Shown here piece after piece: positions 30,163 through 64,000 of a DNA stretch of 64,000 nucleotides. The stretch is taken from positions 186,001 to 250,000 of the IMG/VR virus record IMGVR_UViG_3300018080_008436. One strand, written 5' to 3'. The notes beneath the pieces were generated by a model, which saw only the letters and a program-made list of their open reading frames with translations, did no database searches and was not told where the DNA came from. The position numbers were made by a program, and so were the translations under genes. Every line of letters starts with the position of its first letter. Positions within the stretch are counted from its first letter, which is position 1.

Positions 30163-33100
30163 TTAACTACTCGAACTTGATGAAAACAAGTTCGAACTTG
30201 ATGACGACACATTATTGAATGACTCTGAGCTAGAACTCTTAACCATCGCGTTTGTGCAATCAAACTCAATATCTTCAAAACTTTCAATCTGGAAGAAATT
30301 AATAATCGTATAAGTATGATATCCTGGGACCGTCCCTCCCAAATAAGAACCTGTAAAATTCGTTGGACCACCTTGATTAACAAGTGTCATTCTTGCTGTG
30401 ATACTAGGATTCTCTACAGGGTCTATCCTATTAATTGGTATATGCACTGCCGCTACCGTCTTGACAGGACTTATATCATAATTATAATTGTATGTGAAAC
30501 TATCTCCCCCATTAAATGACACGCTATCAGAAGCTATCTCCTCAGTTTCAGATCCTGGCTCCAAATAAGTAAGAAGAACGGATAGTTGTTTCAAACATTG
30601 TGCGTCAAGTGAACTCGATGAACTATCATCAGAATATCCCTCGGACGAACTCTCTGAATAACTCGATGAACTCTCTGAATATTGCTCAGATGAAGAACTA
30701 GAGCTACTTGAATCACTTGAATTGCTCTGAGACGATTCAGATTGAGAACTCTCTGATTGTGATGACTCAGATTGAGAACTGCTGGACTCACTTTGGGAAC
30801 TTTCAGATTGAGAACTATCACTCTGAGAACTGCTGGATTCAGATTGAGAACTCTCAGATTGAGAACTGGAAGACTCAGACTTAGAGGAAGAAGACTCACT
30901 CTCGGAACTTGAACTTTCTGAATATTGTTCAGAACTTGAACTTGACTCAGAACTAACGGAACTAACAGAATATCCTCCAGATGACGATGAACTAGATGAG
31001 TCAATACTTGAGCTACTTGAGCTACTTGAACTACTGCTGTAATTAGCATTCGCACATTCTTCACAATTGTTATAAATACTGTCAATGTTATGAGTAATTG
31101 GCTTGTCTACCAAACCAACTCTTTGGTAACAGACTCCATTTACGCTGATAAATTCTGCTTCGGTATATGGAACAACTATATTTCCGTTCCATTCATCGAT
31201 ATCGAGTGCCGTAACAACGTCTTCTATTGGACATCCAAGACCATACAATCCACTAGATGGTCCTGCAAAATTCAATCCTACAATCTTTAATTCTCCACCG
31301 ACTTCAATCAATACAGTAGAACCTGAATCTCCTCCCTGCCCCATTCTTGTATCAGCACTATATAATATTTGGTCAGTAAAATATGCCTGTAAATTGGTTC
31401 CAGACCCATCTCCATAATTGACTGTTGCCGCAGTAAACTTCTGGGTCAATGTTGCAAAAGGAGGTGGAGTAATTCCTGTTGTTCTGCCACTCTTGTAAAC
31501 TTGGTCCCCAATATTGTATTCAGATTTATTGGAAAATGCGAAAGGACCATGTCCAACTTCAAGGATATTAGTAGCCGCATCGTCAACATCAACTGAGAAA
31601 ATCGCACAGTCTACTGAATTACTAGCAACTCCGCTTCCTCCGAACTTCATAGCTACGGCTCTTTTCACCTGACCCGCTCTATCAGTAGGAGAGACACCTC
31701 CATCATTTGGAGATGGCTGTAACATCCACAAACCAGTTGTATCGGTACTACCCTCTTCTCCAAGGAAGGCTTCCTCATAAACATGAGGGTCACTGTGGTT
31801 ACTTGATATGTTCGAAAAGCTAAACTCTCCTCCACTGTAAATGACTGTAACACTATGAGTATGAGGATTCGTAGTATCTGGATCGCCACCTGACAACAAC
31901 GATCCTCCAGATGAAACAACAACACTAGAAGATATCCCATCTATCAAATTCCCAGCCTGTTGCCCAGTTATTGTAACTAAATGATAATGGCTATATCCCC
32001 AAGATTCCCCTGTACTGAAATCAAGGAAAAAATAAGTTGTTGAATAAGGAGTTCTATAATCAGGATCATATTTCAGGCCAGCACAGTGATTATTAGTAAG
32101 TGCGACCAATGAATCGTCTGTAGTATCTTTTACAATAGCTCCAAGAGTACATGCTGTTCCACTTTCCTCTATGGCACTAATTCCTCCTTGAAGTGGTCTG
32201 TACTTTTCATCATGAGGAGGACATCCGCCACCAGCACCATCTTTACAACTTCCATGAGCGAACAGTTTCTCAACTACAATAATATCTGTTTTGGTGTTAG
32301 TTGACAAACGCTCTGGAATAAGATCATTTTCGTCTAGCTCAGAAATATCAACTTTTCTCTCTACACCGACAACTACGCATGGTTCTCCAGTATCTACACC
32401 ATCAACAATCTTAGTTCCTGCCATGGCCATAACAACATTAGCTTTTGGCGCTATTTCAGCAACATACAATTCATTGGCATCTCTTTCTTCCTGACTATCA
32501 TATTCAGGAGATCTTGGGACGGCTCTTGCCGTAGCTTGACTGAAACTCCTTGGATTAGAGCACATTGTAAATTCAATATTACCATAGCTTGAAGAACTTG
32601 AAGAACTTGAAGAGTCTATCGATGAACTAGAACTGGAAGATTCTGAACTTTCAGATTGTGAACTTTCGGAATAACCTTCAGAAGAAGAACTAGAAGATTC
32701 TGAACTCAAACTCTGAGATGATTCAGAATATTGTTCAGAAGAAGAACTAGACTTACTTGAATCAGATTGTGAACTGTCAGAATAATTTTCGGAACTTGAG
32801 CTAGATTCGCTTGAAACGCTTTGTGAACTGTTAGATTGTGAACTGTCAGAGTAGCCTTGGCTAGACTTACTTGAATCAGACAATGAACTGTCAGATTGTG
32901 AACTGTCAGAATACTCTTCAGACGAACTTGACGAACTTGGAGAACTATCCGAACTGACAGAACTTACAGAGTACTCTTCAGAAGAAGAACTTGAACTACT
33001 GTGACTAGAACTACTTTCACACAGAGTTGGAAGACGAACAATAGTTATTGAAGGCCAAACACCTGTTGCTGTCTGAGCATCAATAAACGCCTGAACTTGC

Positions 33101-33390
33101 GGTATTGTTGGATCAGGAAATGTAAGGTCTGTGAACACCCATGCAAAATAACAACGGACATCATTGATTGTCCTACTTCCATTACCATCAAAATCAGCAT
33201 CAGGGATTTCAGGAAGTATATCTGCGGTTATTGATGGCCAAACACCTGAAGCTGTTTGAGCGTCAATGAAATCTTGAACTTGGGATAATGTTGGATTTGG
33301 AAAATATCTATCCATGAAAACCCAAGCATAATAAACGCGAACGTCATTTATATTCAAGTCAAAATTATGTTCGAAATCTGCACAACCCAT
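30163..33390 (-). CDS. Ser-rich protein with dockerin-like N-terminus and trypsin-like (S1) serine protease domain
   Basis: CTLG...LTNNHCA (His), VDCAIF (Asp), VYKSGRTTG, GGDSGST (Ser). Confidence 0.88.
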   Translation of the reverse strand: MGCADFEHNFDLNINDVRVYYAWVFMDRYFPNPTLSQVQDFIDAQTASGVWPSITADILPEIPDADFDGNGSRTINDVRCYFAWVFTDLTFPDPTIPQVQAFIDAQTATGVWPSITIVRLPTLCESSSSHSSSSSSSEEYSVSSVSSDSSPSSSSSSEEYSDSSQSDSSLSDSSKSSQGYSDSSQSNSSQSVSSESSSSSENYSDSSQSDSSKSSSSSEQYSESSQSLSSESSSSSSEGYSESSQSESSESSSSSSSIDSSSSSSSSSYGNIEFTMCSNPRSFSQATARAVPRSPEYDSQEERDANELYVAEIAPKANVVMAMAGTKIVDGVDTGEPCVVVGVERKVDISELDENDLIPERLSTNTKTDIIVVEKLFAHGSCKDGAGGGCPPHDEKYRPLQGGISAIEESGTACTLGAIVKDTTDDSLVALTNNHCAGLKYDPDYRTPYSTTYFFLDFSTGESWGYSHYHLVTITGQQAGNLIDGISSSVVVSSGGSLLSGGDPDTTNPHTHSVTVIYSGGEFSFSNISSNHSDPHVYEEAFLGEEGSTDTTGLWMLQPSPNDGGVSPTDRAGQVKRAVAMKFGGSGVASNSVDCAIFSVDVDDAATNILEVGHGPFAFSNKSEYNIGDQVYKSGRTTGITPPPFATLTQKFTAATVNYGDGSGTNLQAYFTDQILYSADTRMGQGGDSGSTVLIEVGGELKIVGLNFAGPSSGLYGLGCPIEDVVTALDIDEWNGNIVVPYTEAEFISVNGVCYQRVGLVDKPITHNIDSIYNNCEECANANYSSSSSSSSSSSIDSSSSSSSGGYSVSSVSSESSSSSEQYSESSSSESESSSSKSESSSSQSESSQSESSSSQSDSSQSESSQSESSSSQSESSQSESSQSESSQSNSSDSSSSSSSSEQYSESSSSYSESSSEGYSDDSSSSSLDAQCLKQLSVLLTYLEPGSETEEIASDSVSFNGGDSFTYNYNYDISPVKTVAAVHIPINRIDPVENPSITARMTLVNQGGPTNFTGSYLGGTVPGYHTYTIINFFQIESFEDIEFDCTNAMVKSSSSESFNNVSSSSSNLFSSSSSS

Positions 33391-33404
33391 TTTGTATTTT
33401 CCCT

Positions 33405-34931
33405 TTAGTTACTTGAAGTCGATGATGAAGACTCATTATTAAACGATTCTGAGCTAGAACTCTTTACCATAGCATTTGTGCAATAGAACCTAACTGAATT
33501 GAATTCCTCTATAAAATCAAAATTAACAAGCGAATACCTAGCATCATCCCCCGATGATAAGAAATCAAGATATGAAGCAACATATGTTGTTTCAAACGTA
33601 CTGTTCCTTCTAGTCATTCTAGTTGTTATTCCTAAATTCTGAGATGTATCTAACCTGTTCTTATTAATAACAAATGATACAACTGTTTGTGTTGATGGGA
33701 TGACTGCGGAATCAAAATTATAAGTAAAATAGCCATTCCCATTATAATCTACACTATTAGATGTGAATGTATCTGAACCACCCTCAATATATTCTACTTC
33801 AATAGTTAATGGCTTGAGACATTCTGTGTCATCCAAAGAACTTGAACTACTTGATGACTCACTGTAGTTCTCTGAGCTAGTTGAAGAACTAGACTCTGAA
33901 TCTAAAATAACAGCAGAACTGGACGAACTATTAGACTGGGAACTTTCGCTTGCAGAAGATTCGCTTTGAGAAGAACTTGATTCGGACTTAGACGAACTTG
34001 ACTCAGATTCCGAACTACTTGACTCAGATTCCGAACTACTAGATTCACTCTCTGAACTACTTGACTCTGAACTCTCCGACTGAGAGCTTGAACTTTGCGA
34101 ACTTTCAGACTGTGATGATTCAGACTTGGAACTTTCAGACTGTGATGATTCAGACTGTGATGACTCTGACTGTGAACTTTCAGATTGACTACTTGAACTC
34201 TCTGATTGTGAACTTTCGCTTTGAGAACTCTCACTTGCAGAACTTTCAGACTCAGAACTTTCAGACTCACTTGCAGAACTTTCAGACTCAGAACTTGAGG
34301 ATTCAGAATAGTCTTCAGAAGAGGATGAAGATTCGCTTTCTGAACTACTTGATTCTGAGGCCGAAGATTCGCTTTCTGAACTACTTGATTCGCTATTGCC
34401 CTCAGATGATGTACTTGAACTTGAGTCTAAAGAGGAGCTTGAACTTGATGTAGTTGAAGAACTTGATGAAGATACGTTATTAAAACTCTCTGAAGAACTA
34501 GACTCATCTGATATCAACTCTTCACTCGAACTTGAAGAACTTGAATCATAAACAACAATATAACCAGTTTCTTGTTCCCCAGAAGTAGGATCTCTTAACG
34601 GAATCCATTCGTTGTCAAATAAATTCGTTGTTACAGTTCTATATTTGGGTACATACCTTTTGATTGGTGGGTTGGGCTTTGTGATGAAAGGATCAGCATC
34701 TCCAACCTGAATTCTCACGATTTCTATGATATACCAAGCAGGAGAAAAACAATATCCACCATACTCATAATGGAATATCAAAATGTAAACTTTAGGAGTA
34801 ACTTCGCCCGTAACGATGTCTGTGTCTTTCTTGATGTAGAACGGCTGGCCATCATGAGTTCCTCTTAACTCATAAATACCATTAGCGTTTTCATCGCCAA
34901 AATCAATAGCGATTAGCTGGGGGAAAGACAT
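33405..34931 (-). CDS. Ser-rich protein
   Basis: 508 aa; C-terminal CLK.L......Y.E.G...CTNAMVKSSSSESFNN domain shared with the 30163 ORF. Confidence 0.8.
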   Translation of the reverse strand: MSFPQLIAIDFGDENANGIYELRGTHDGQPFYIKKDTDIVTGEVTPKVYILIFHYEYGGYCFSPAWYIIEIVRIQVGDADPFITKPNPPIKRYVPKYRTVTTNLFDNEWIPLRDPTSGEQETGYIVVYDSSSSSSSEELISDESSSSESFNNVSSSSSSTTSSSSSSLDSSSSTSSEGNSESSSSESESSASESSSSESESSSSSEDYSESSSSESESSASESESSESESSASESSQSESSQSESSSSQSESSQSESSQSESSQSESSKSESSQSESSQSSSSQSESSESSSSESESSSSESESSSSESESSSSKSESSSSQSESSASESSQSNSSSSSAVILDSESSSSTSSENYSESSSSSSSLDDTECLKPLTIEVEYIEGGSDTFTSNSVDYNGNGYFTYNFDSAVIPSTQTVVSFVINKNRLDTSQNLGITTRMTRRNSTFETTYVASYLDFLSSGDDARYSLVNFDFIEEFNSVRFYCTNAMVKSSSSESFNNESSSSTSSN

Positions 34932-52938: not shown

Positions 52939-52999
52939 AAAATACGGGATACCTAAGCATTGCCCGTTTTTGAATGGATGTCGAAACATTGCCATTCTT

Positions 53000-53092: not shown

Positions 53093-53129
53093 AGTTGTTT
53101 TAGAACTCTGTTCGTTAAAACATCGTTCT

Positions 53130-53232: not shown

Positions 53233-53263
53233 AAAAAAAGCCCTGTCATTTCTGACAGGGCTT
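53233..53263 (-). terminator. attenuator terminator C
   Basis: AAGCCCTGTCA-GAAA-TGACAGGGCTT-TTTTT. Confidence 0.92.
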
Positions 53264-54361: not shown

Positions 54362-55279
54362 TTATATGTTGAGTTTTTCCTTAAGAATTTTCCTAAATGT
54401 CTTGGCCGCACCTTCTGGGGTAGCATTTTCCAAGTACCATTGATAGCCGTTTTCGGCAATTTCCTTGATATTATACCGATTTTCTAAGTCTTTGAGATCA
54501 GTATCCTCATCAATATAGATATAATGTTTACCTTCAACCAGTGGATTATAGTAATAGGGCTTGTAATTAAGCAGTAAAGGCTTCTTCATCATCATGTAAT
54601 CGATTTCTCTCCGATTCTTCTTGTCAGTAACGACAGTTGACCTTCCACCAAGAACGATACCATATTTACTTCTAGCCATATAATCTCGATATTCATCATC
54701 ATTCAGTGGTCTTCCGGTTTTCTTCAAACCTTGATCGCTTCTGATGACCTCAATTCCTTGTTTTTCTAACTCTGGAAGAAGCTTATGTCTGGCTTTCCAG
54801 TTCTTGCCACAGAAGAAACCAAGTCTATCAATTTCAACTTCTTGTTGAAGTTCTTCTTCTCTGCCAACAAACTTGGTGAACAAACGACTTGGAAAAAATG
54901 TCCAAGGACAGAACTTATCTCTGAACACTTGAAGTTCCTCAAGAGATTTTGGGATCATCTTCTTTCTATTCATATATCTATGAACTCGTTTAGTAGAAAC
55001 ATGACAATCTTGGACTTTGATAATCAAATCAAAATCATAATTGTAAACTCCCAGAGAATAACATGGACTTGGATATTCCCACAAATCAAGATAGATCTTC
55101 TTACCTGCACACTGCAATATAGTAGCTCGATACCATCTTGTTACTTTTAATGCTTCCTCATGATAAAACATGTCGTAAAGATCACTGTTTTTGAGAGCAT
55201 TCAAAAGGTATGGCATCCCTAGAGTACCACCATATCCGTCCAACTGCTTTTTATTAATACCTAACTTGATTTTTTCCAC
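54362..55279 (-). CDS. putative GT-B glycosyltransferase
   Basis: GFFCG...R.KL...YRDYMARSKYGIVLGG...REIDYMMM...LVEGKHYI...IAENG, a CgeB/GT1-like C-terminus. Confidence 0.6.
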   Translation of the reverse strand: MEKIKLGINKKQLDGYGGTLGMPYLLNALKNSDLYDMFYHEEALKVTRWYRATILQCAGKKIYLDLWEYPSPCYSLGVYNYDFDLIIKVQDCHVSTKRVHRYMNRKKMIPKSLEELQVFRDKFCPWTFFPSRLFTKFVGREEELQQEVEIDRLGFFCGKNWKARHKLLPELEKQGIEVIRSDQGLKKTGRPLNDDEYRDYMARSKYGIVLGGRSTVVTDKKNRREIDYMMMKKPLLLNYKPYYYNPLVEGKHYIYIDEDTDLKDLENRYNIKEIAENGYQWYLENATPEGAAKTFRKILKEKLNI

Positions 55280-55289
55280 TTTACTTCTC

Positions 55290-56600
55290 CTATGATCTAA
55301 ATGGCAAATGTTTAATTAATTTCCTCTCGCCTTTTGTCTTTTGAGAAACTGGTTTTGGAGTCGGAGGAACTTCTTCAATCTTCTCTATCTTTGGTTCAAC
55401 AGTAACAGTCTTAATATCAGTGTTGACCCTTTGGATATTCTGGTTACTGGACCCAACAGAAACGTCATCTCCCGTATTATCAACAGAAACTACACGATAA
55501 GATTTCTTAACTTCTGGGACTTCTTCAATCTCTGTAGTTCTAACAACAGGTTCTTGCGATTTCTTAACCTTAGCGGCAGTAGTCATTTCTCTTGATGCGG
55601 ATATAAGTTCATCTCTTTTCTCAAGATTCTTTAAATAAGGTTTCTGAGCGTCTTCTGGCTCATCTTTCGTCTTATCCTTATCTCCTGGCTTACAATACAT
55701 GCCCCAAGTTCTTTCATCCTCAACTTTTCCTAACTTTCCTGTCACTTCTTCCATAGCCTCTGAGAATGGCATGTGAGGGAAACAAGTAAGACCAGAATCA
55801 GGATTACAGTTGTAAACCTCAAGTCCTTCTTCCTTGAAATATGGCTGAAGTTTGGGATAATATTCAGTATTCATTATCTTGTATGTCTTCTTATTGCAGT
55901 TAACAGCACCTTTCTCTCGTCTTTCATCAAAATGATAAGTGTAGTCTTCAGACATTGTGAAATCTGCACCCAAAAGATAAATTCTTCTAAAACCAAGCAA
56001 GAAAAGGATTCTGACAGCAGGAAGCATAACGCTTCTACCTCCACCATACTGTCCACTATTTCCCCAGTTAATTTTATCTTCGAAAAGCCAACGGCTTGCC
56101 TCAAATTTCTCATTCCTATGAAAGAAAACGCAATTAGGGCACTCGCCAACAAGAACTTTCTTGCCCTCTTTCTTCATTTCTGACCAAGTATCATTATCAA
56201 AAATTGGCTTCTCAGCATGAGCATGTGGAACAAACTTAGTAATTGCTGGATCAAGCCAAATTGATTTAAGAAATCTCTGAGGATCATCTACGCATGACCA
56301 AAAAGTTGGTCGAAAAGTCGCAGGTCCATTGTTTACCCCATAAGTGATGACCCCTGGTTTTTTTAACGCCGCAAGATCATACATCCCACTTACTAAACTT
56401 GGCCCATTAAGAATCAAAAAAGCAGAAGCTCCTTTGTATTGACCAACCAAATTTAACTGAGCGCACTCTCTGGTAAAGAAGAATGGAGTCTGCTGATAAT
56501 ATTCATTCGACACGCAATGTCCAAGGTGTCTATCTCGATGATGCCTGAATGTCTTAATATCATTGCCGTCTTTAAGTAAGCTTCTACGTCTGGTTCCCAT
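55290..56600 (-). CDS. Maf/DUF115 (MptE-like) family protein, putative sugar transferase
   Basis: AFLILNGPSL, ITYGVNN, GGRSV...LFLLGFRRIYLLGADF, VYNCNPDS. Confidence 0.7.
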   Translation of the reverse strand: MGTRRRSLLKDGNDIKTFRHHRDRHLGHCVSNEYYQQTPFFFTRECAQLNLVGQYKGASAFLILNGPSLVSGMYDLAALKKPGVITYGVNNGPATFRPTFWSCVDDPQRFLKSIWLDPAITKFVPHAHAEKPIFDNDTWSEMKKEGKKVLVGECPNCVFFHRNEKFEASRWLFEDKINWGNSGQYGGGRSVMLPAVRILFLLGFRRIYLLGADFTMSEDYTYHFDERREKGAVNCNKKTYKIMNTEYYPKLQPYFKEEGLEVYNCNPDSGLTCFPHMPFSEAMEEVTGKLGKVEDERTWGMYCKPGDKDKTKDEPEDAQKPYLKNLEKRDELISASREMTTAAKVKKSQEPVVRTTEIEEVPEVKKSYRVVSVDNTGDDVSVGSSNQNIQRVNTDIKTVTVEPKIEKIEEVPPTPKPVSQKTKGERKLIKHLPFRS

Positions 56601-56629
56601 ATATATTCTCCATTAAGAACTTTTTTTCA

Positions 56630-56977
56630 TTATACAATAACCTCTTCACCAAACTCAACATCGAACCCAGTTACTAGAAAGGTTTTTTCTTTTGTTTCGC
56701 CATTAAATGGTTTTACATAATATTCTACTACAATTTTAGTGAATTCATCAGCCGAGGCATCGAGTCGGATAGATTTAACCGCTCCATTGCTGATTTCTTC
56801 ATTTTTTACATTACACTTTATATCCATTCCATGGATGTAGAACTGAGAATAGTGTTGTCTACCAAATATTCTTCCATCAGAAATGCAAATGGGGGATGGA
56901 AATGAAGAATCAAGTCTCCCTCCATGGAAATTACTATGTTCGGACATCCTTATACCTCTATTACGTGCTCGTCCCAT
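56630..56977 (-). CDS. hypothetical protein
   Basis: 115-aa ORF in an operon-like run. Confidence 0.55.
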   Translation of the reverse strand: MGRARNRGIRMSEHSNFHGGRLDSSFPSPICISDGRIFGRQHYSQFYIHGMDIKCNVKNEEISNGAVKSIRLDASADEFTKIVVEYYVKPFNGETKEKTFLVTGFDVEFGEEVIV

Positions 56978-57297
56978 AGCTTTTGCGCTTCTTCTCTATC
57001 ATTTGCTAAAAAATCAACATCTAAACGAGATATGGGGAATCTTGCAACCTTACCTTTTTCCCCATTTGTCCCGTAAGTTTCAATTATTAAGTAACAGACA
57101 TCTCCAGCAACAACCTCAATTGTGGCACGTTTAAGAGTATACTCATCTGGTAGTTCCCATGTATCTTTTGCGTCTATTTCAATCTTATCCCATGTTAACT
57201 TTTCAAAATCTGGACCATGTTCTCCGCTCATGTTACACATTTTTTTTGGACGACCAAAAAGACAACAAAGACAAGTATCTGATCTTAATTTTTTCAT
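56950..57297 (-). CDS. hypothetical protein
   Basis: 115-aa ORF. Confidence 0.55.
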   Translation of the reverse strand: MKKLRSDTCLCCLFGRPKKMCNMSGEHGPDFEKLTWDKIEIDAKDTWELPDEYTLKRATIEVVAGDVCYLIIETYGTNGEKGKVARFPISRLDVDFLANDREEAQKLWDEHVIEV

Positions 57298-57300
57298 GAT

Positions 57301-58041
57301 TTACCTTTGGATATTTGGCCCACCCCTATCATGATTGAGATGATATTGAGGAAGAACATTTAACGGTCTTCTGCCACCCATATGAACTCTAAACTGTCGG
57401 TCAGATTTCGTTCTTCTCCAAACATCTCTAAGTCTGTGGCAGTATCTCCCTACTTTCGTTCCATCTTCCTGAACATCACCCTTCTCTTTGATTGCCTCAA
57501 CTCTTGCCAATTGAAAATATCCAGCACAGGTTTTTCTTCCGCTAATCCATTTCTTTGGCCAATCTTTGGGAATTTGAGCCACATCCTCGATTACACAAGG
57601 ATAAACTCTCTCGTCATTTTCGAAATATTCTATGCAAAAGGGAATATCTAAAGAATGACGATCAGCCCCAAGAACTTTTGTTTCGTCTTTATAATCATCA
57701 CTCTCTAGCTTCTTCTTAATATCATCAAAAAACATTGGATCATACACCATATCAGAATCGGCAAACAAAATCCAATCAGCTTCTGTTGCTCCTGCCCTCA
57801 TATTTCGAGGAATAGCCCTATTAGGAGCCTGTTTAGGGGTCAATTCGACATCAAGTATGTTCAAACCCTTTTCTTTAAAAAAATCAATAACCTGAGGAGT
57901 TGTTGGATCTCCATTTTCAGGGGTATAAGAAATGCTAACCAGTATGTCTGGTATATCTCCTTTCTGTTGCAATATCGAACTGAGCATCCAACACAATCTT
58001 CGTTGATATGAATGACAATGTATACAAATTTCTAATTTCAT
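57301..58041 (-). CDS. GT-A (family 2-like) glycosyltransferase
   Basis: RN..A......DWILFADSDMVY (DxD); GYFQL. Confidence 0.75.
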   Translation of the reverse strand: MKLEICIHCHSYQRRLCWMLSSILQQKGDIPDILVSISYTPENGDPTTPQVIDFFKEKGLNILDVELTPKQAPNRAIPRNMRAGATEADWILFADSDMVYDPMFFDDIKKKLESDDYKDETKVLGADRHSLDIPFCIEYFENDERVYPCVIEDVAQIPKDWPKKWISGRKTCAGYFQLARVEAIKEKGDVQEDGTKVGRYCHRLRDVWRRTKSDRQFRVHMGGRRPLNVLPQYHLNHDRGGPNIQR

Positions 58042-58050
58042 AAAAACTCC

Positions 58051-58719
58051 TTAAGCTTTAACAAACCACCAAGATCTGATTACACCTCCAACAGCATGGA
58101 TCTTATAACCATATCTCGCTCCATAATAATCTACTACCGTTTTGACATGATAATCCAAACCTCTCCCCCAATAATCTTTCATGCCAGAATTCTCACCATC
58201 TTTATAATCATGACCTGCTACCACTCCACCCGTTCTAACTTTAGGAGTCCATGCATAGATATCATTAAATATTCCTTCCAAACTGTGGTCGCCATCGATG
58301 TATACAAAATCAAGAAGGCCATCTGGGATTTCCTGATAAACCTCAATACTAAATGCCTTGACTAATTCAACCCTTCCAGCATCAATAAATTCTTTCAGAT
58401 GATTCTCACAATCTTTTTGTCGATTACTTCCATCCTTGTCATACTTTTCTTTCCCATAACCAGATCCAAAATCATCAATCCATGGATCAATACAATAGTA
58501 TTTCTGCAAATCTGATTTAGAAACCATGTGGTGAGAAAACGTCCCCTTGTCAACCCCTATTTCTGCTCCGAATTGATATTTCATATCTTTGCAAAGCTTA
58601 GGAAAAAAGTGATCTCGGTACTTATTTTTTCCTTTCTCTTTAAGGATCTTACTCGCGACTTCTTCAACTTGATTGATTATTTGTTCATTCCTGTACTTCA
58701 CCATAGAAAACTCCAGCAT
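58051..58719 (-). CDS. class I SAM methyltransferase (Methyltransf_24-like)
   Basis: GAEIGVDKG, YCIDPW, DFVYIDGDHS, GGVVAGHDY; start uncertain (58719 or 58704). Confidence 0.88.
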   Translation of the reverse strand: MLEFSMVKYRNEQIINQVEEVASKILKEKGKNKYRDHFFPKLCKDMKYQFGAEIGVDKGTFSHHMVSKSDLQKYYCIDPWIDDFGSGYGKEKYDKDGSNRQKDCENHLKEFIDAGRVELVKAFSIEVYQEIPDGLLDFVYIDGDHSLEGIFNDIYAWTPKVRTGGVVAGHDYKDGENSGMKDYWGRGLDYHVKTVVDYYGARYGYKIHAVGGVIRSWWFVKA

Positions 58720-58736
58720 TATTGTATTCGAATTTA

Positions 58737-59528
58737 TTATACAGTTTCGTCGTAGATCCCACCCCATCCATTTGGGTTGGCCTTATAGGGTCTTGTCCCC
58801 CTCATCGCCTTGGTAAGAATCTTCTTGTTCTTCTCCTGACAAGCCAGATCATTTTTTAAATTTGGCTTAGAATGTGGTTGATGAAAAAGATTTATGCTTT
58901 CCATTGTCTCTCCAAGCCAAATAACCTTGGCTCCTGATCGCCCCATTCTTGTAAAAAGATCAAAATCTTCAGAACCCCACCCTACAAAAGCTTCATCAAA
59001 ACCTCCGACTTTATGCCATTGATCAATGTGAGCACACTGACAGCCGCCAGCAGTAGTTCTTTTTTTGATTCTCCCCCGTCTACATGAAGCTAAATTTTCG
59101 AATGGGTCAAGTCTCCCTTTGTATATCTGATTAGCTATTTTTGGTTTCCAATACATAGTCCTAGACTCAATGAAAACATTTGGAGCAACTCTCTTCAAAA
59201 TCTCATCAACAAAAGTTGGCCCGAAAAAGATATCAACATCAGTGGTCATGATGTATGGAGTTCTAGCATTTCTAATTCCCACATTGTTCATCTTCGCTCT
59301 TTCAAATTCTTCCCCAAGAGGCTCTTGAACAATTCTAATCAATGGTTCGCATTCTCTGGATTCAAAAAACTTCTTAAGTTCATCATAATTCTTACTCCCA
59401 CCATCAGCTATAACCACCTCAAAATCTTTATTGGTTTGCTTTTCTAATGATAATAAGAAAAACTTTGTGATATTCTTTTTAAGGTCTAACCGATCCCTAT
59501 TAGAAGCGGCTATAGTCAAGGTTTTCAT
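58737..59528 (-). CDS. family 2 / galactosyltransferase-type glycosyltransferase
   Basis: FEVVIADGGS, NVGIRNA, TDVD, GGFDEAFVGWGSEDFDL, FHQPH. Confidence 0.9.
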   Translation of the reverse strand: MKTLTIAASNRDRLDLKKNITKFFLLSLEKQTNKDFEVVIADGGSKNYDELKKFFESRECEPLIRIVQEPLGEEFERAKMNNVGIRNARTPYIMTTDVDIFFGPTFVDEILKRVAPNVFIESRTMYWKPKIANQIYKGRLDPFENLASCRRGRIKKRTTAGGCQCAHIDQWHKVGGFDEAFVGWGSEDFDLFTRMGRSGAKVIWLGETMESINLFHQPHSKPNLKNDLACQEKNKKILTKAMRGTRPYKANPNGWGGIYDETV

Positions 59529-60262
59529 TACTTCTCCTTTGGCGGGGCGTATCTATACGATGGAAGTCCCTGATAGTGTATAAAATGAACTCTTTTGGAA
59601 TTAATCTCTTTCTTTGTATATGAAGAATACTTCCATAAATTGCAAAATTCTGGCTCATGCAGTTCCCAGTATTTCTCTTGTCCCATCCATCCTCCAGATC
59701 TACGATCCATCGCCCTTGCAAGTGGAGGCTCCGCTGAATTCCCAGGTTTCTTTTCCCAACATTCTATGATCTCATCTGGGAAGGTCTTATCTCTAATGTA
59801 AAGGAATCCTGCATTAGGAAGCTTTCTGGTATCCTTCTTGCCTCTCCAGAAACATTTCCTGCGCTTATATTGCTGTAAATTAGCTTGACAGTATTCCTTC
59901 TTCCCCATAACTTCCCAGAAATCATTCGGCAATGCTTTTTTTGCGTGACAATCCCAATCAATAAACACAATCTCATCATAATCTTCCATGGCTATCTTTA
60001 AAATATCCAATTTATGTCGATATTGATTAGAAGACAAATCATATGGATGTGGATCTTTGTCCAGAAGAACCAAATTATCCATTGAAAATCTATCCCTGAG
60101 ATGATTATAATTCTCTTCTCCGAATATATAGGTTACAAATGGTGCTGTGAATGGATTCTTCAGAGTTTTATTGATATCATATTCCATCTTATAACGTCTT
60201 TCCACAACCCTATTCTCTCTTGAGAAAATCCCCCACAGTCCTCTTATAAATGCTCTTTTCAT
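59528..60262 (-). CDS. putative GT-A sugar transferase (paralog family, 4 copies)
   Basis: KRAFIRGLWG...YRHKLDIL...DEIVFIDWD...NAGF. Confidence 0.65.
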   Translation of the reverse strand: MKRAFIRGLWGIFSRENRVVERRYKMEYDINKTLKNPFTAPFVTYIFGEENYNHLRDRFSMDNLVLLDKDPHPYDLSSNQYRHKLDILKIAMEDYDEIVFIDWDCHAKKALPNDFWEVMGKKEYCQANLQQYKRRKCFWRGKKDTRKLPNAGFLYIRDKTFPDEIIECWEKKPGNSAEPPLARAMDRRSGGWMGQEKYWELHEPEFCNLWKYSSYTKKEINSKRVHFIHYQGLPSYRYAPPKEK

Positions 60263-60273
60263 AAGTTTCTCCT

Positions 60274-61005
60274 TTACCAACCAACCCTCAATCTTCTGTG
60301 GACCTGTTTTTTATTTAAGTGTTTGAAGCACCTGTTTTTTGATGCATATTGTTCTTTGGAAAATACCTTGCACTCATCTAGATAGAAAAAATCAGGCTCA
60401 AAATTATTCCAATACTCTTCCATACCTTGCCATCCACCGAGAAGATCATCTGTGTATTTTGCAATAACTCTTTCTTCAGACCATGGCCTACCCATATCTT
60501 CCCATAACTGCAATAGATCCTCTGCCACTTTCTTCTCTCTACAATAGACAAAACTAGCACAAGGGATCATCTTCAAATTTTCAGTTCTCCACTTGGCTTT
60601 TCTTCTTTTGTAAGATCGAAGTATAGCTTGTAGAGGTTGCTTTTTGCTAAGGACTTCCCAGAAATCTTCTGGCAATCTTTTGATTGGATATGTGTCCCAA
60701 TCAAGAAATACAACTTCATCAAATTCCTGCATACCTTGATAAAGAACCTCCAACTTATGTCTGAACTGTTCTGTATCTATATCCCAGACAATCGGCCTCT
60801 TATCGACCAGTTTCGCGTTAAAACCCTCATCTACCAGGAACTTATAGTTATCTTCCCCAAATACATAAGCGGTAAAAGGCTCGTTCCATGGATTCGCTTT
60901 CAAAACCTTAATGTCGTTATCTATTTTGGAGCGCCTTTTATATAAACGACGACCTTGATGGTCATGAATGCCCCACAAACCTCTTATAAAGCCTCTTTTC
61001 ATCAA
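60274..61005 (-). CDS. putative GT-A sugar transferase (paralog)
   Basis: RGFIRGLWG...FRHKLE...VFLDWD. Confidence 0.65.
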   Translation of the reverse strand: MMKRGFIRGLWGIHDHQGRRLYKRRSKIDNDIKVLKANPWNEPFTAYVFGEDNYKFLVDEGFNAKLVDKRPIVWDIDTEQFRHKLEVLYQGMQEFDEVVFLDWDTYPIKRLPEDFWEVLSKKQPLQAILRSYKRRKAKWRTENLKMIPCASFVYCREKKVAEDLLQLWEDMGRPWSEERVIAKYTDDLLGGWQGMEEYWNNFEPDFFYLDECKVFSKEQYASKNRCFKHLNKKQVHRRLRVGW

Positions 61006-61006
61006 C

Positions 61007-61567
61007 TTAATCCTTATCTAAATCACTTACTTTGAAAAGCCAACTAGTATCAATGAATTTCTTATGTGGTATCCCTAAAACTTCATGAACAGCCTTCCTA
61101 ACAGAATCTCTCTTAATATCATGGCCAGTAATATATCCAGTTTTCTTGACTTTTGGCAACCACTTTATAATATCATTCTTAACGGCTTCATATTGATGGT
61201 TGCCGTCAATATATACCAAATCTAAGCTCTCATCTTCGAACTTATCAACTGCCTCATCTCCAGGCATTTTGTATTTTTTAAGTTTATCTTTGTGTGGAGC
61301 CATTTTTTGATCGAACATCTTCTCTACAAGCTCCATTGGCCTGCTTTTAGAAGCGCCATCACTATCATCATAACCATTCTGCCAAGGGTCAATGGCATGA
61401 ATCATTTTGATATTATTGTCAGATGCAAAAATTGACGTACTATCTCCTGAATAACAACCAATTTCTACCATAACAATATCTTTCATATCACTAACGTATT
61501 TAATCATATTCTTAAGGCCGTTTATGAGTTTGGCCTTTCTTCGCATTATATTCCTACTCATTTCCAA
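61007..61567 (-). CDS. class I SAM methyltransferase (Methyltransf_24-like)
   Basis: VEIGCYSGDST, AIDPW, DLVYIDGNH, GYITGHD. Confidence 0.88.
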   Translation of the reverse strand: MEMSRNIMRRKAKLINGLKNMIKYVSDMKDIVMVEIGCYSGDSTSIFASDNNIKMIHAIDPWQNGYDDSDGASKSRPMELVEKMFDQKMAPHKDKLKKYKMPGDEAVDKFEDESLDLVYIDGNHQYEAVKNDIIKWLPKVKKTGYITGHDIKRDSVRKAVHEVLGIPHKKFIDTSWLFKVSDLDKD

Positions 61568-62289
61568 CCTCTCTTTAATCTACCAGCAACCTGCTTTTGG
61601 TTTAGGTGCTTGAAACATCTGTTCTTTGTTTTATATTGCTCTCTTGAGAACAAAATACATTCATCTAGATAGAAGAAATCAGGCTCGAAGTTATCCCAAT
61701 AAACATCCATACCCTGCCAACCACCTAAAGCCTCATCCATGTATCGTGCCATAATTATTTCTTCAGACCATGGTCTACCTCTTTGCTCCCACATTTCACA
61801 AAGTCTTTCAGTAACAGCCTTATCTCTACAATAAACAAAGCTTGCGCAAGGAACTTTTCTCTGCTCATCTTTTCGCCATGTAGCTTTCTTTCTGTGGTAA
61901 ATACGTAAAATAGCCTGAAACGATCTTTTCTTGCCAAGAACTTCCCAAAAATCCTTTGGTAATGGTTTCGTTGGTAATGTATCCCAGTCAAGGAATACCA
62001 TCTCATCGAAATCATTCATCCCTTGATCGAATGCTTCAAGTTTATGTCTGAATTGCTCTTTTTCCATATCCCAGACAATTGGTTTCTTATCGACCAATCT
62101 GGAATCAATCCCTTCGTCCAAAAGATACTTATGATTGTCCTCTCCAAAAGTATAACAAACATAAGGCTCGTTCCAGGGATTCATCTTAAGTAGTTTAATG
62201 TCATTATCAATTTTAGAACGTCTTTTATAGAGGCGACGACCCTGATGATCATGAATCCCCCATAGACTTCTTACAAAACCTCTCTTCAT
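61558..62289 (-). CDS. putative GT-A sugar transferase (close paralog of 60274)
   Basis: Identical stretch LWGIHDHQGRRLYKRRSKIDNDIK. Confidence 0.65.
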   Translation of the reverse strand: MKRGFVRSLWGIHDHQGRRLYKRRSKIDNDIKLLKMNPWNEPYVCYTFGEDNHKYLLDEGIDSRLVDKKPIVWDMEKEQFRHKLEAFDQGMNDFDEMVFLDWDTLPTKPLPKDFWEVLGKKRSFQAILRIYHRKKATWRKDEQRKVPCASFVYCRDKAVTERLCEMWEQRGRPWSEEIIMARYMDEALGGWQGMDVYWDNFEPDFFYLDECILFSREQYKTKNRCFKHLNQKQVAGRLKRGWK

Positions 62290-62299
62290 TATTTATACC

Positions 62300-63046
62300 T
62301 CATAGTAAATGTAAAAAACATGATTTCTTTCCATCTAACATGGTTTGTGAATAGACGGATTTTCTTCTTAAATTGCAAACCTCTGGCTCAAACAAATTCC
62401 AGTAGACTTCTGAACCACACCAACCACCACAGAAATCATCAATGTATTTAGACATTGCAGGTTCATCATCAAAAATCAAACTTTTTTCTCGGAACCGAAG
62501 TTCCAATCCTCTTTTCTGTCTTTCCGCCTGCTTTTCGTCAACCCATTTATGAAGGCCATCCCATATATCTATCATCTTTTCTGGGATAGAATCATCTCTA
62601 AAATAGGCGAATCCTCCATTACAAACTTTTCTAAGATCTGTTTCTCTCCAAAGGCACTTTTTAGTCCTATATTGGAATAGGTTAGCCTGGAAGGACTCTT
62701 TTTTACCCAATTCGTCCCAAACATAGTCGAATTTATCAGTTGGCACACAATCCCAATCGAGAAAAGCAATCTCATCAAAATAATTGAATGCGATATGAAA
62801 AATCTCTAGTTTATGACGGTACATCTCCGTTTCAAGATCCCACATGGTTGGGAATGTATTTACGCAGATGGAGTTAAAGCCATTATCTTCCAGCCATTTG
62901 TGGTTCTCATGCCCAAACGTAAATATCGTAAACCAATCTCGTTCTTTGGTTTCAAGAATTTCCTTTTGGATTTTACCGTTACGATGTTTCCAAACATCGC
63001 CCCACAAACCTCTTATGAATGCTCTCCTTACAGTGGACATTCCCAT
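62300..63046 (-). CDS. putative GT-A sugar transferase (paralog)
   Basis: RRAFIRGLWG...YRHKLEI...DEIAFLDWD...NGGF. Confidence 0.65.
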   Translation of the reverse strand: MGMSTVRRAFIRGLWGDVWKHRNGKIQKEILETKERDWFTIFTFGHENHKWLEDNGFNSICVNTFPTMWDLETEMYRHKLEIFHIAFNYFDEIAFLDWDCVPTDKFDYVWDELGKKESFQANLFQYRTKKCLWRETDLRKVCNGGFAYFRDDSIPEKMIDIWDGLHKWVDEKQAERQKRGLELRFREKSLIFDDEPAMSKYIDDFCGGWCGSEVYWNLFEPEVCNLRRKSVYSQTMLDGKKSCFLHLL

Positions 63047-63834
63047 CCAAGCTCCTCAGATAACTCTTTCAGTTCATCATTTTGAGTTAATTTGACGAAA
63101 CGATTGTCGTCTTTGACAGTTTCCCATCTTTTGAGAACATTCATCGACTGGGCATCCTTCTTTTTCTTCATTCCGTCAAAACTACTTCCCCATGATCTCC
63201 CATGACCTATCTTCATGACTGTATTCAATCGACTATCATCTTCTTTGAGGTCAAGAATTGTTTCCAACAACCTTCTGTACTGTGGATCTGAAAACCATTC
63301 ATCATATTTAAGAACAACCTTATGTTCAAAATTCTGAGTCTTGTTCAGACATTCTTTGGCCATTTTTATCCACATTTTTGAGAAACTATTTGGATTTGAC
63401 AAAAGTCTGTTCCTACCCCAGTTTAATACACTAGCATATTGGTTATATGGGTCTCGTATTACAAGGACATTATCTCTTCGTTTACTAAACTCATCCAGTC
63501 CATATTGTTGACAGAAATAATGTTTCTGCTCTCGAATCTCTGGGTTGAGTCCAATATCGAATACTGTAAACTCCGTTCCGAGAATGATCGCACTTGGCTT
63601 GGAATTTCCAACCTCATCATAATGAGTCAGTTCCTTATATCCCAACTCATCTTTAGTAAAAGCCCAAAAAGGGATTTCAAAACCAACCATCTTGCCTTTC
63701 TTTCTGCCAAGCTGAGACATACAGTTCTTATAAACAACTGAATCAAAATGACCTATAAGCCAAGATGTGATTGCATGCTGTCCAGTTCTCTGTACTCCCA
63801 CTACATGAATTTCTCTATCAGTTGCGTAATTCAT
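63028..63834 (-). CDS. sulfotransferase-like protein
   Basis: VVGVQRTGQHAI (5'-PSB-like) and VIRDPYNQYAS (3'-PB-like); LKYDEW. Confidence 0.7.
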   Translation of the reverse strand: MNYATDREIHVVGVQRTGQHAITSWLIGHFDSVVYKNCMSQLGRKKGKMVGFEIPFWAFTKDELGYKELTHYDEVGNSKPSAIILGTEFTVFDIGLNPEIREQKHYFCQQYGLDEFSKRRDNVLVIRDPYNQYASVLNWGRNRLLSNPNSFSKMWIKMAKECLNKTQNFEHKVVLKYDEWFSDPQYRRLLETILDLKEDDSRLNTVMKIGHGRSWGSSFDGMKKKKDAQSMNVLKRWETVKDDNRFVKLTQNDELKELSEELGWECPL

Positions 63835-64000
63835 TTTACCTCACGAATTATGAATATAAAATCTTCCTCTTTGGGTTCAATAACCTCGCACTTAGGGCAT
63901 TCAAAATCATTCTTCTTGTTTATTTTTTCACAAGTATCTGACCCACCATGTTCAAAACATAACATGGGATGAGGTTCTTCCTCAGGCATATTGGCGTTTT
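63831..64000 (-). CDS. C-terminal end of a hypothetical protein (partial)
   Basis: Open frame from the window edge ending ...CPKCEVIEPKEEDFIFIIREVK-TGA, overlapping the next ATG. Confidence 0.5.
   Translation of the reverse strand, partial: NANMPEEEPHPMLCFEHGGSDTCEKINKKNDFECPKCEVIEPKEEDFIFIIREVK

Follow-up and report, generated by a model that had tools for sequence, protein, structure and literature searches.

Motility accessory factor (Maf) enzymes (PF01973; structure 5mu5) are soluble, cytoplasmic transferases that O-link nonulosonic acids directly to Ser/Thr of flagellin (bioRxiv 10.1101/2020.06.03.131540). In Gram-positive bacteria, serine-rich repeat proteins (SRRPs) serving as adhesins are hyper-O-glycosylated in the cytoplasm by several soluble glycosyltransferases (GTs), with a GtfA/GtfB core followed by GT8 and other extension enzymes (PMC8498110). 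Viruses can also encode soluble GTs, and in chlorovirus PBCV-1 a methyltransferase, that glycosylate structural proteins independently of host secretory machinery (PMC4691112); examples include PBCV-1 A064R, the mimivirus fibril glycosylation clusters, and the glycans on mycobacteriophage capsid and tail tube proteins (Freeman et al., as cited in PMC12619734). Finally, clusters of paralogous GTs and sugar-activating enzymes in jumbo cyanophages, which vary between relatives, have been read as capsular or O-antigen modification systems (Iyer et al., PMC7824862).

Here we examined a candidate glycan-building locus in a 476-kb uncultivated phage from marine sediment (98% complete; IMG/VR record IMGVR_UViG_3300018080_008436). 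The window analysed is a 64,000-nucleotide stretch, positions 186,001 to 250,000 of that record. A first-pass annotation of the sequence alone had described about eight GT-like genes, two methyltransferases, and a sulfotransferase-like gene in this region, including a Maf/DUF115-type protein and four paralogs of an RGLWG...HKL...DWD family. Our analysis confirmed this description. Thirteen ORFs tile the minus strand of positions 54362-63834 of the window with overlaps or gaps of a few bases (Table 1). Eight are GT-like: one clear GT2, two weak GT hits, the Maf-like protein, and the four RGLWG paralogs.

Table 1. Features of the predicted glycan island and candidate acceptors (window coordinates).
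Position	Strand	Feature	Supporting observations
22568..30151	-	Candidate acceptor: 2,527-aa protein, 49% Ser (1,233 Ser)	SQSESSS-type repeats interrupted by small globular domains and a Laminin_G_3 domain (1.3e-18); that domain hits PHROGs annotated as virion structural protein or baseplate wedge
30163..34931	-	Candidate acceptors: 1,075-aa protein (25% Ser, protease-like domain) and 508-aa protein (35% Ser)	PHROG 20754 protease at 2.9e-37
53238..53263	-	Strong terminator-like hairpin	
54362..55279	-	305-aa GT-B-like protein (Glyco_trans_1_2/CgeB-like C-terminal half); last gene of the conserved core	Pfam PF13524 E 0.003, below cut-off; C-terminal 115 aa align to the island's clear Glyco_trans_1_2 protein at E 1e-4; 49% identical ortholog at the same position in viral contig G004
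55290..56600	-	436-aa Maf-like/sialyltransferase-fold enzyme (catalytic core about residues 10-300) with a disordered charged tail (339-436); predicted transferase of a CMP-activated ulosonic acid	Pfam MptE-like 25.5 bits (cut-off 34.6); PHROG 4603 'alpha-2,3-sialyltransferase' 7.6e-9; AF2 core pLDDT 85-95; more than 462 metagenomic homologs 55-86% identical over the core
56630..57297	-	Two overlapping 115-aa ORFs (56630-56977 and 56950-57297)	No Pfam or PHROG hit; not similar to each other
57301..58041	-	246-aa GT2-like GT-A protein, DSD motif; conserved core	Pfam Glycos_transf_2 E 0.008, below cut-off; 16.4 bits in the own-genome scan; 59% identical to the G004 ortholog; homologs beside Maf-like genes in 6 PVC loci
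58051..58767	-	238-aa SAM-dependent methyltransferase	Methyltransf_24 7.6e-15
58737..59528	-	263-aa GT2 with a galactosyltransferase-type C-terminal region	Glyco_tranf_2_2 1.2e-13; Glyco_transf_7C 6.9e-11; Glycos_transf_2 1.6e-7
59528..61005	-	RGLWG-family predicted GT-A paralogs A (59528-60280) and B (60274-61005)	HMM hits of 335 and 392 bits
61007..61567	-	186-aa SAM-dependent methyltransferase	Methyltransf_24 1.4e-19
61558..63046	-	RGLWG-family predicted GT-A paralogs C (61558-62289, the one modelled) and D (62300-63046)	AF2 pLDDT 95.2; D101-W-D103 invariant, read here as the DxD motif
63028..63834	-	268-aa sulfotransferase-fold protein	No Pfam, NCBIfam, or PDB sequence hit; ESM Atlas model of this exact protein aligns to Sulfotransfer_3 clusters (TM 0.67 over 235 residues); C-terminus weakly matches the island's clear sulfotransferase (E 0.003)
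63831..64000	-	3' end of a 616-aa protein with two GT-A-like halves, continuing to window-equivalent 65681 (L001:31-1881)	N-half profile hits glycogenin (GT8) in PDB at E 3e-5; DSD and DAD motifs; 67% identical in G004 and 65% in L047; halves occur separately or fused to Maf-like in Planctomycetota loci

The first-pass coordinates cover only the downstream third of a single-strand island of roughly 25 kb, which continues about 16 kb past the end of the window. This extension encodes the double GT-A protein, a clear sulfotransferase, a NeuB-type nonulosonic-acid synthase, a CMP-sugar synthetase, and more GT2, GT4, GT32, and methyltransferase genes; counting these, about ten further GT and methyltransferase genes lie in the same genome, and the gene content is richer than could be seen from the window. 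Every Pfam GT2 hit above the family cut-off in the genome lies in the island. The genome also encodes an APS kinase (1.4e-43). None of the enzyme-sized island proteins has a hydrophobic 19-residue segment above 1.6; the only such segment among 35 ORFs is in a 102-aa ORF of unknown function. No flippase, polymerase, or polyprenyl-phosphate transferase is evident.

We next used structure prediction to place the two families with little or no support from sequence profiles. The best structural match of the Maf-like AF2 model is Maf 5mu5 (VIA-align Z 12.9, rmsd 3.8, 206 residues), followed by the GT42 sialyltransferases CstI/CstII at Z about 10. As in Maf systems, a NeuB-type synthase and a CMP-sugar synthetase are co-encoded, the enzyme is predicted to be soluble and cytoplasmic, and the expected acceptor is Ser/Thr hydroxyls. 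However, only the central domain of Maf (chain residues 247-517) is matched, with the flanking Maf domains replaced by a short N-terminus and the charged tail. No flagellin is in view; the neighbours are instead Ser-rich phage or repeat proteins, and the family is found mainly in viruses and in PVC-bacterial loci, one of them a prophage. The four RGLWG paralogs are 40-70% identical, share invariant R..LWG, RHKL, and DWD motifs, and have no Pfam, PHROG, or NCBIfam hit. Foldseek and VIA-align place the model as a GT-A fold closest to the retaining enzymes Gat1, glycogenin (GT8), GT6, and UGGT at Z 11-13. PBCV-1 A064R is also among the structural matches (2p6w, Z 11.1).

Comparison with the other described systems revealed further differences. 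Like SRRP glycosylation, this locus combines several predicted soluble GTs, including GT8-like GT-A enzymes, with very long Ser-rich repeat proteins as proposed acceptors. In contrast, no GtfA/GtfB pair or accessory Sec system was identified, the system is encoded by a phage rather than an adhesin locus, nonulosonic-acid, methylation, and sulfation modules are added, and the repeat is SQSESSS-like rather than an SRRP dipeptide repeat. Relative to virus-encoded virion glycosylation, the scale is about 30 genes, the proposed acceptors are poly-Ser tracts rather than capsid C-termini or atypical N-sequons, sulfation and nonulosonic-acid functions are present, and there is no sequence homolog in 50,697 deposited phage genomes. 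Relative to the jumbo cyanophage clusters, there are no sugar kinases or dehydratases in view, and the specific families are linked to Ser-rich structural genes in other phages.

The first-pass annotation had inferred a methylated, sulfated virion glycan coat on thousands of Ser acceptors, with modification of DNA or the host surface as alternatives. This interpretation is partly supported. The count of thousands is correct, as the genome has 20 Ser-rich ORFs holding 3,893 serines, the largest of which (2,527 aa) carries a virion-type Laminin_G_3 domain. To test the proposed link, we examined gene neighbourhoods elsewhere, and these gave it independent comparative support. In viral contig G001, the only RGLWG gene sits between Ser-rich ORFs of 1,191 and 576 aa, in a run of five that lies within the head-tail module, between the portal, major head, and adaptor genes and the major tail gene. 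Contigs G003, G004, and G005 also have Ser-rich ORFs 3-9 kb from their RGLWG genes, though the single one in G004 is only moderately Ser-rich; in G004 and G005 these are the only Ser-rich ORFs on the contig. Maf-like homologs in Planctomycetota and Verrucomicrobiota have a Ser-rich frame within 5 kb in 56 of 79 loci, against 5 of 57 beyond 5 kb. These loci are largely orthologous, so the counts overstate the number of independent events; in genomes of 65-70% GC, long Ser-rich frames can be partly non-coding, and the threshold (at least 40% Ser in 60 aa) was our choice. In the one locus examined in detail, CP054186.1, the Maf-like gene and a methyltransferase close a prophage head-tail module, followed by a Ser/Gly-rich protein with a Hint-like core read by eye. 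In Verrucomicrobiota and Planctomycetaceae loci, the neighbours are 1,000-2,500-aa frames with YD-type repeats, also read by eye, and an N-terminal poly-Ser tract. Finally, a third sulfotransferase in the phage genome directly precedes a Ser-rich ORF inside a run of giant ORFs.

Other observations do not fit this pattern as well. The island is 19 kb from the nearest extreme Ser-rich ORF in this genome and is flanked upstream by PhoH-like and RecD-like genes, not structural genes. G004 keeps the core island despite its single moderately Ser-rich ORF, and G002, a complete 51-kb phage, has an RGLWG gene and no Ser-rich ORF. Distant RGLWG relatives (21-28% identity) mostly lack Ser-rich neighbours within 10 kb.

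Taken together, we consider it most likely, with only moderate confidence, that the island builds a decorated O-linked glycan on the Ser-rich tracts of the phage's own large structural or fibre proteins, in the host cytoplasm before or during assembly. The enzyme assignments, the absence of membrane segments, the APS kinase, the Ser-rich ORFs, and the gene linkage are results of the analysis. That the Ser tracts are glycosylated at all, that the products sit on the virion surface, which enzyme starts the chain, and the order of steps are inferred, in the absence of biochemical or expression data; only DNA runs hold the sequence. In this view, a protein-directed transferase, either of the RGLWG family or the Maf-like enzyme, would put the first sugar on Ser. 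The GT2, GT4, and GT32 enzymes and the double GT-A protein would extend the chain, Methyltransf_24 and other methyltransferases would O-methylate it, and the sulfotransferases would add sulfate from PAPS, supplied in part by the phage's own APS kinase. A nonulosonic or ulosonic acid would be made by the NeuB-like synthase, activated by the cytidylyltransferase, and transferred by the Maf-like enzyme. A conserved core of double GT-A, MT24, RGLWG, GT2-like, Maf-like, and GT-B-like genes is shared with other huge phages and in part with PVC-bacterial loci, with the NeuB, sulfotransferase, and GT4 block and the paralog expansion accessory to this genome.

A less likely but possible alternative is that the island remodels host surface glycans (LPS, capsule, or S-layer glycan) during infection, which could block superinfection or change cell-surface properties. 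Iyer et al. read paralogous GT clusters in jumbo phages as diversifying outer polysaccharides to pre-empt attachment of other phages (PMC7824862). Nonulosonic acids, methylation, and sulfation are common on bacterial surface glycans. The location of the island outside the structural operon and its variable content between relatives, as expected for a surface-diversifying locus, are also consistent with this reading. The lack of transmembrane segments in enzyme-sized proteins, and thus of a flippase, polymerase, ligase, ABC transporter, or initiating phosphoglycosyltransferase, weakens this proposal but does not exclude it. Soluble GTs can also act on lipid-linked intermediates that host machinery then exports. 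The surface-glycan reading does not explain why RGLWG and Maf-like genes sit next to Ser-rich ORFs inside virion modules of unrelated small phages and prophages.

It is similarly doubtful, though conceivable, that the enzymes act on acceptors unrelated to the Ser tracts, such as other phage or host cytoplasmic proteins or a small or lipid-linked molecule, leaving the tracts as unmodified flexible linkers. G002 and G004 show that the families can exist with few or no Ser-rich ORFs, the structural neighbours of the RGLWG fold are tied within about 1.5 Z units and have very different acceptors, and the two 115-aa ORFs and several other island proteins have no assigned function. In contrast, close linkage to Ser-rich genes recurs in several different gene arrangements, and an investment of about 30 genes suggests an abundant acceptor.

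Glycan hypermodification of phage DNA to escape restriction is very unlikely: although phage GTs decorate 5-hydroxymethylpyrimidines (bioRxiv 10.1101/2023.12.21.572611) and both MT24 proteins hit PHROG 2675, whose label 'DNA methyltransferase' is a family name only, no thymidylate-synthase-family hydroxymethylase was found in the genome in a search with a working control, no TET/JBP hit was obtained in a search whose control was uninformative, NeuB, CMP-sugar synthetase, sulfotransferases, and APS kinase have no known role in DNA modification, and the Ser-rich linkage is left unexplained. Although the overall terminator count is not above chance, the hairpin listed in Table 1, with an 11-bp stem, 6 GC pairs, and a T-run, lies just before the tRNA cluster and may end the minus-strand unit.

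The window covers bases 186001-250000 of a single 476,248-bp viral contig with 39% GC, which CheckV estimates to be 98% complete. It holds a tmRNA with the tag AKKVIEFPTASAVAA, 16 tRNAs, virion-type PHROG hits, and giant ORFs, and the last of the four tmRNA/tRNA clusters sits directly downstream of the glycan island. A near-identity DNA search of the region against 50,697 deposited phages returned no match, and tblastn of an RGLWG paralog and of the Maf-like core against the same collection also found none, no cultured relative being available. The DNA of the region is found in sediment and seawater metagenomes from three studies, and a search of sequencing runs returned only DNA runs. Promoter and terminator counts were not above chance. 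The features discussed below are collected in the following table.

Coordinates of the features discussed; positions are in the window unless another record is named
Coordinates	Strand	Feature
54362-63834	-	Thirteen ORFs tiled with overlaps or gaps of a few bases
54362-55279	-	305-aa GT-B-like protein; sub-threshold Pfam hit to Glyco_trans_1_2
55290-56600	-	Maf-like protein; sub-threshold Pfam hit to MptE-like
56630-57297	-	Two 115-aa ORFs without an assigned function
57301-58041	-	GT2-like protein; sub-threshold Pfam hit to GT2
58051-58767	-	Methyltransf_24 protein
58737-59528	-	Clear GT2
61007-61567	-	Methyltransf_24 protein
63028-63834	-	Sulfotransferase-like protein
L001 (same island, outside the window):3162-3863		233-aa NeuB homolog
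6972-7352	-	tmRNA/tRNA cluster
9503-11212	+	tmRNA/tRNA cluster
36350-37873	-	tmRNA/tRNA cluster
51945-53206	-	tmRNA/tRNA cluster
16378-17982	-	534-aa ORF with an arabinofuranosidase-type domain
22568-30151		2,527-aa Ser-rich protein
30163-33390	-	1,075-aa Ser-rich protein with a protease-like domain
40877-46457	-	Six tandem ORFs of about 300 aa, including 40877-41863 and 45534-46457
G000:C1 (this genome, outside the window):97640-98092	+	APS kinase
G000:C1 (this genome, outside the window):364610-365701	-	Third sulfotransferase
L004 (viral contig G001):6433-10008		1,191-aa Ser-rich protein
L129 (CP054186.1):2614454-2635362		Phycisphaeraceae prophage with a Maf-like gene

The four paralogs sharing RGLWG..HKL..DWD, reported in the first-pass annotation, are real. 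They are 40-70% identical, with 56 columns invariant among the four, and match no Pfam, PHROG, or NCBIfam family at E up to 0.01; a word search found at least 297 metagenomic relatives, all unnamed. The AF2 model of paralog C (mean pLDDT 95) is a GT-A fold whose best structural matches are retaining enzymes: Gat1 (6mw5, Z 12.9), glycogenin (Z 12.5), GT6 blood-group transferases, the UGGT catalytic domain, and PBCV-1 A064R (Z 11.1). D101 and D103 of the D-W-D motif are invariant in 44 sequences, and the motif sits where we expect the DxD motif. Although the predicted fold and acidic motif are those expected of a GT8 (glycogenin-type) enzyme, sequence membership in GT8 was not supported, as the RGLWG profile finds nothing in PDB sequences and GT6, GT24, and other retaining GT-A enzymes tie within about 1.5 Z units. 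We therefore file the paralogs as a new family within the GT-A fold. A pattern scan for RGLWG in 185,579 species' genomes, which has limited sensitivity, found no relative, but our HMM later found the family in two Planctomycetota loci.

The Maf-like protein scores 25.5 bits against the PF01973 gathering cut-off of 34.6, with only profile positions 109-170 matched, although the precomputed table of the sequence collection does list PF01973 for it. Its model, in contrast, finds the solved Maf glycosyltransferase 5mu5 as the top Foldseek hit (E 2.5e-5) and as the best structural alignment (Z 12.9, rmsd 3.8, 206 aligned residues), followed by the sialyltransferases CstII (Z 10.3) and CstI (Z 10.1) and then mammalian sialyltransferases, supporting a predicted catalytic domain of the Maf/GT42 type. 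Only residues 247-517 of the 632-residue Maf chain align, so that the flanking Maf domains are missing; the model has a short N-terminus and a disordered tail at residues 339-436. A supply of a CMP-activated nonulosonic or ulosonic acid is predicted to be co-encoded, as NeuB (8.1e-33) and CTP_transf_3 (6.9e-19) genes lie 8-9 kb upstream in the same island, although both are absent from the related viral contig G004. Whereas known Maf enzymes act on flagellin, the genes found next to the Maf-like family are Ser-rich proteins.

The sulfotransferase-like protein has no Pfam (PF13469/PF00685) or NCBIfam hit, but the Atlas model of this exact sequence (pTM 0.80) aligns to Sulfotransfer_3 clusters at TM 0.67 over 235 residues. 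Because this compares predicted models with predicted models, it provides only a lead. Sequence-only PDB searches gave nothing usable for the Maf-like protein, the sulfotransferase-like protein, a 616-aa protein and a 328-aa weak epimerase hit, or the 305-aa GT-B-like protein, and the best PDB sequence hit of one alignment profile (A3) was a sialyltransferase at a non-significant E of 0.72. Overall, the inventory in the first-pass annotation of eight glycosyltransferase-like genes, two methyltransferases, and one sulfotransferase-like gene holds, although two of the eight rest on weak evidence.

The island is larger than that annotation could show, as the same strand continues without a break past base 64000. 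In order, Pfam finds the 616-aa protein (no Pfam hit), Sulfotransfer_3 (2.7e-21), NeuB, the CTP_transf_3 cytidylyltransferase, GT2 (5.8e-29), Methyltransf_24, a second GT2, a class-I methyltransferase, a weak Epimerase_2 hit, a weak GT1 hit followed by a methyltransferase, two clear GT1/GT4 proteins and a clear Glyco_trans_1_2, and a GT32 (Gly_transf_sug plus Gb3_synth). The 616-aa protein has two GT-A-like halves (double GT-A). A profile of its N-half hits glycogenin in PDB at E 3e-5, whereas hhalign of this half against the RGLWG profile gave 3% probability, so the two are not demonstrably the same family. The C-half has no PDB hit, and its GT-A nature rests on a conserved LKLDxD motif only. 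Every Pfam GT2 hit above the family cut-off in the genome lies in this island. Elsewhere the genome has one more GT1, a third sulfotransferase, and an APS kinase (PF01583, 1.4e-43), but searches found no ATP sulfurylase or CysD; the phage can therefore boost PAPS supply for its three predicted sulfotransferases.

The identity of the predicted acidic sugar is not resolved by the NeuB homolog. It scores 114 bits against the Pfam NeuB cut-off of 22, but its NCBIfam scores of 106 bits for PseI and 96 bits for NeuB fall far below the equivalog cut-offs of 340 and 400, and at 233 aa there is no room for a C-terminal SAF domain. No DegT aminotransferase was found in the genome, so the phage does not encode a full pseudaminic or legionaminic acid route.

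Comparison with relatives distinguishes core from accessory genes. G004, a 161-kb viral contig, keeps in the same order the double GT-A (67% identical), MT24, one RGLWG gene (45%), MT24, the GT2-like gene (59%), the Maf-like gene (60%), and the GT-B-like gene (49%). It lacks the 16-kb block with NeuB, sulfotransferase, and GT4 genes and three of the four RGLWG paralogs. Contigs of 182 kb and 148 kb show the same order. The conserved genes upstream of the island are PhoH-like and RecD-like, not structural. Several proteins of relatives were annotated only by BLAST or HMM against this island.

We next considered the likely acceptor. The Ser-rich proteins are real and extreme, with 20 ORFs in the genome having at least 40% Ser in a 60-aa window (a threshold of our own choice) and 3,893 Ser in total. 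The largest, of 2,527 aa, has 1,233 Ser and carries SQSESSS-type repeats between small globular domains, together with a Laminin_G_3 domain (1.3e-18) that hits PHROGs annotated as virion structural protein and baseplate wedge. The repeated globular domain has no tblastn relatives in the other contigs, which precluded a reverse search from the acceptor side. The 1,075-aa protein contains a protease-like domain between its two Ser tracts (PHROG 20754, 2.9e-37; weak Nal1 hits). Next to the Ser-rich genes, a 534-aa ORF carries an alpha-L-arabinofuranosidase B catalytic-type domain (PF09206, 1.4e-9) and may be a virion-associated glycan-degrading enzyme. Of the six tandem ORFs, the two tested match PHROG 10356 'virion structural protein', suggesting a paralog array of structural proteins.

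To test the proposed link to these proteins, we fetched in full five other viral contigs that carry an RGLWG homolog (G001-G005). In G001 (40.8 kb), the only RGLWG gene (46% identical) lies directly between Ser-rich ORFs of 1,191 and 576 aa, on the same strand, within a run of five Ser-rich ORFs located between the portal, major head, and head-tail adaptor genes and the major tail protein gene. The 1,191-aa protein matches PHROG 9915 (unknown function, E 2e-100), indicating that Ser-rich proteins of this kind already exist, unannotated, among catalogued phage families, although part of the score may be compositional. In G003, three Ser-rich ORFs occupy the same head-to-tail position about 9 kb from the RGLWG gene. 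In G004 and G005, the only Ser-rich ORFs of each contig lie 3-7 kb from the RGLWG genes, although the single one in G004 is only moderately Ser-rich. In contrast, G002, a complete 51-kb phage, has none, and more distant RGLWG relatives (21-28% identity) mostly have none within 10 kb.

The Maf-like family provided a second, independent test, with homologs of 36-50% identity in 164 stretches of bacterial assemblies, nearly all Verrucomicrobiota or Planctomycetota. Of 79 loci with enough flank, 56 have a Ser-rich window within 5 kb of the gene, whereas only 5 of 57 have one further out. The split is 41 of 45 against 1 of 34 in the Phycisphaerales group and 15 of 34 against 4 of 23 in the remaining loci. 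In 44 of 80 loci the Ser-rich frame is on the same strand and starts within 3 kb downstream. Because the bacterial loci are largely orthologous, these counts are not independent events, and genomes of 65-70% GC have long open frames, and gene callers split the Ser-rich gene. Homologs of the double GT-A (12-14 loci), the GT2-like protein (6), MT24 (4-5), and RGLWG (2) accompany the Maf-like gene, and in one case the Maf-like domain is fused to a double-GT-A C-half.

In the complete chromosome CP054186.1, the one locus examined at this level, the Maf-like gene and a methyltransferase close a prophage module (Phage_capsid_4, cement, head-tail joining, Phage_tail_2, and others). They are followed by a Ser/Gly-rich protein with what looks by eye like a Hint-type core, and then by cellular heavy-metal resistance genes. 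Prophage status of the other Phycisphaerales loci is inferred from their similar arrangement. About 40 Phycisphaerales assemblies share the Maf-like plus Ser-rich pair, which suggests PVC bacteria as hosts of the family. Inducible Phycisphaerales prophages could serve as a tractable experimental entry point. In Verrucomicrobiota and Planctomycetaceae loci, the neighbors are frames of 1,000-2,500 aa with an N-terminal poly-Ser tract and, read by eye, YD-type repeats. Among six such Verrucomicrobiota and Planctomycetota MAG loci (L049, L051, L058, L069, L077, L082), the giant frames begin in five with a poly-Ser tract of 60-150 residues and lie next to Maf-like, double GT-A, GT2-like, and MT24 genes. 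Poly-Ser N-termini on such repeat proteins paired with a glycosylation cassette did not turn up in our literature searches. Within the present genome, the third sulfotransferase (363 aa; Sulfotransfer_3, 27 bits) lies immediately upstream of a 1,091-aa Ser-rich ORF, both inside a 36-kb run of giant ORFs (up to 2,638 aa) with seven Ser-rich members.

Taken together, these data partly support the proposal in the first-pass annotation of a methylated, sulfated virion glycan coat on thousands of Ser acceptors. In the mechanism we propose, soluble enzymes would build an O-glycan on Ser tracts of virion proteins in the cytoplasm: RGLWG and/or the Maf-like enzyme would initiate, GT2, GT4, GT32, and the double GT-A would extend the chain, and O-methylation and sulfation from PAPS, supported by the phage APS kinase, would precede addition of a NeuB-derived ulosonic acid by the Maf-like enzyme. 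What the analysis shows directly is the (predicted) enzyme folds and the gene linkage; in the absence of expression or biochemical data, the order of steps, the acceptor, and the virion location are inferred. Neither family strictly requires Ser-rich proteins, as G002 and G004 illustrate, and the island in this genome is not adjacent to the Ser-rich genes, the nearest extreme one being 19 kb away. We consider this explanation only somewhat more likely than not.

The first-pass annotation had also named host-surface and DNA modification as alternatives. Jumbo-phage glycosyltransferase clusters have been read as host-surface modification systems (PMC7824862). However, a Kyte-Doolittle 19-residue scan, a crude predictor, gave no segment above 1.6 in 34 of 35 island proteins, the exception being a 102-aa ORF and not an enzyme-sized protein. 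The island therefore lacks its own flippase, polymerase, transporter, or initiating phosphoglycosyltransferase, which fits a cytoplasmic soluble acceptor rather than a Wzx/Wzy- or ABC-dependent locus. Glycosylated hydroxymethyl bases are argued against by the absence from the genome of a thymidylate-synthase-family gene (PF00303, whose control matched in 10 of 14 reference genomes), while TET/JBP (PF12851) was also absent in a search whose control matched nowhere.

Virus-encoded protein glycosylation is established. Serine-rich repeat adhesins of Gram-positive bacteria are hyper-O-glycosylated by cytoplasmic enzymes (PMC8498110); of the components of such systems, acceptor-like Ser-rich proteins are present here, and the island contains GT4-type genes of 292-363 aa, assigned at the level of family only and not as a GtfA/GtfB-type initiating pair. 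Maf enzymes O-link nonulosonic acids, including Neu5Ac and Kdo, to flagellin Ser/Thr (bioRxiv 10.1101/2020.06.03.131540; PMC4065374), large DNA viruses glycosylate their capsids or fibrils autonomously (PMC4691112), and mycobacteriophage capsid and tail tube proteins are reported to carry glycans (Freeman et al., as cited in PMC12619734). Literature searches for serine-rich proteins together with huge, jumbo, or mega-phages found no paper combining them. New here are the scale, the poly-Ser acceptor class proposed, the sulfation and ulosonic-acid modules, the unannotated RGLWG and short Maf-like families, and the sharing with PVC-bacterial loci. Virion glycosylation by phage-encoded enzymes is known from a few cases with two or three genes, whereas this phage devotes about 5% of its genome to predicted glycan synthesis and nearly 4,000 serines to possible acceptor sites. 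If the link holds, these phages would carry a mucin-like coat that could affect adsorption, particle stability, sticking to marine polymers, or evasion of host recognition. The analysis also gives names and testable roles to three protein families with hundreds of metagenomic members and no annotation: the RGLWG GT-A family, the short Maf-like family, and the double GT-A protein.

A broader possibility, which we regard as less likely than not, is that a clade of uncultivated huge phages, together with small phages and prophages of Planctomycetota and Verrucomicrobiota, makes mucin-like virion fibers. These would be poly-Ser tracts carrying methylated, sulfated O-glycans capped with a sialic-acid-like sugar and built by a dedicated cytoplasmic pathway, in which the protein-directed enzymes would be a previously undescribed GT-A family (RGLWG) and a stripped-down Maf. 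The same cassette would also modify the poly-Ser N-termini of giant YD-repeat proteins in PVC bacteria.

Finally, a 249-kb contig labelled as a Nanoarchaeota MAG (L050, JBBTAN010000017.1; 29% GC) carries Maf-like, GT2-like, and full-length double GT-A homologs in the huge-phage arrangement and may be a phage contig binned into an archaeal MAG. The MAG labels 'Synergistaceae' and 'Methanomassiliicoccales' on other homologs look similar.
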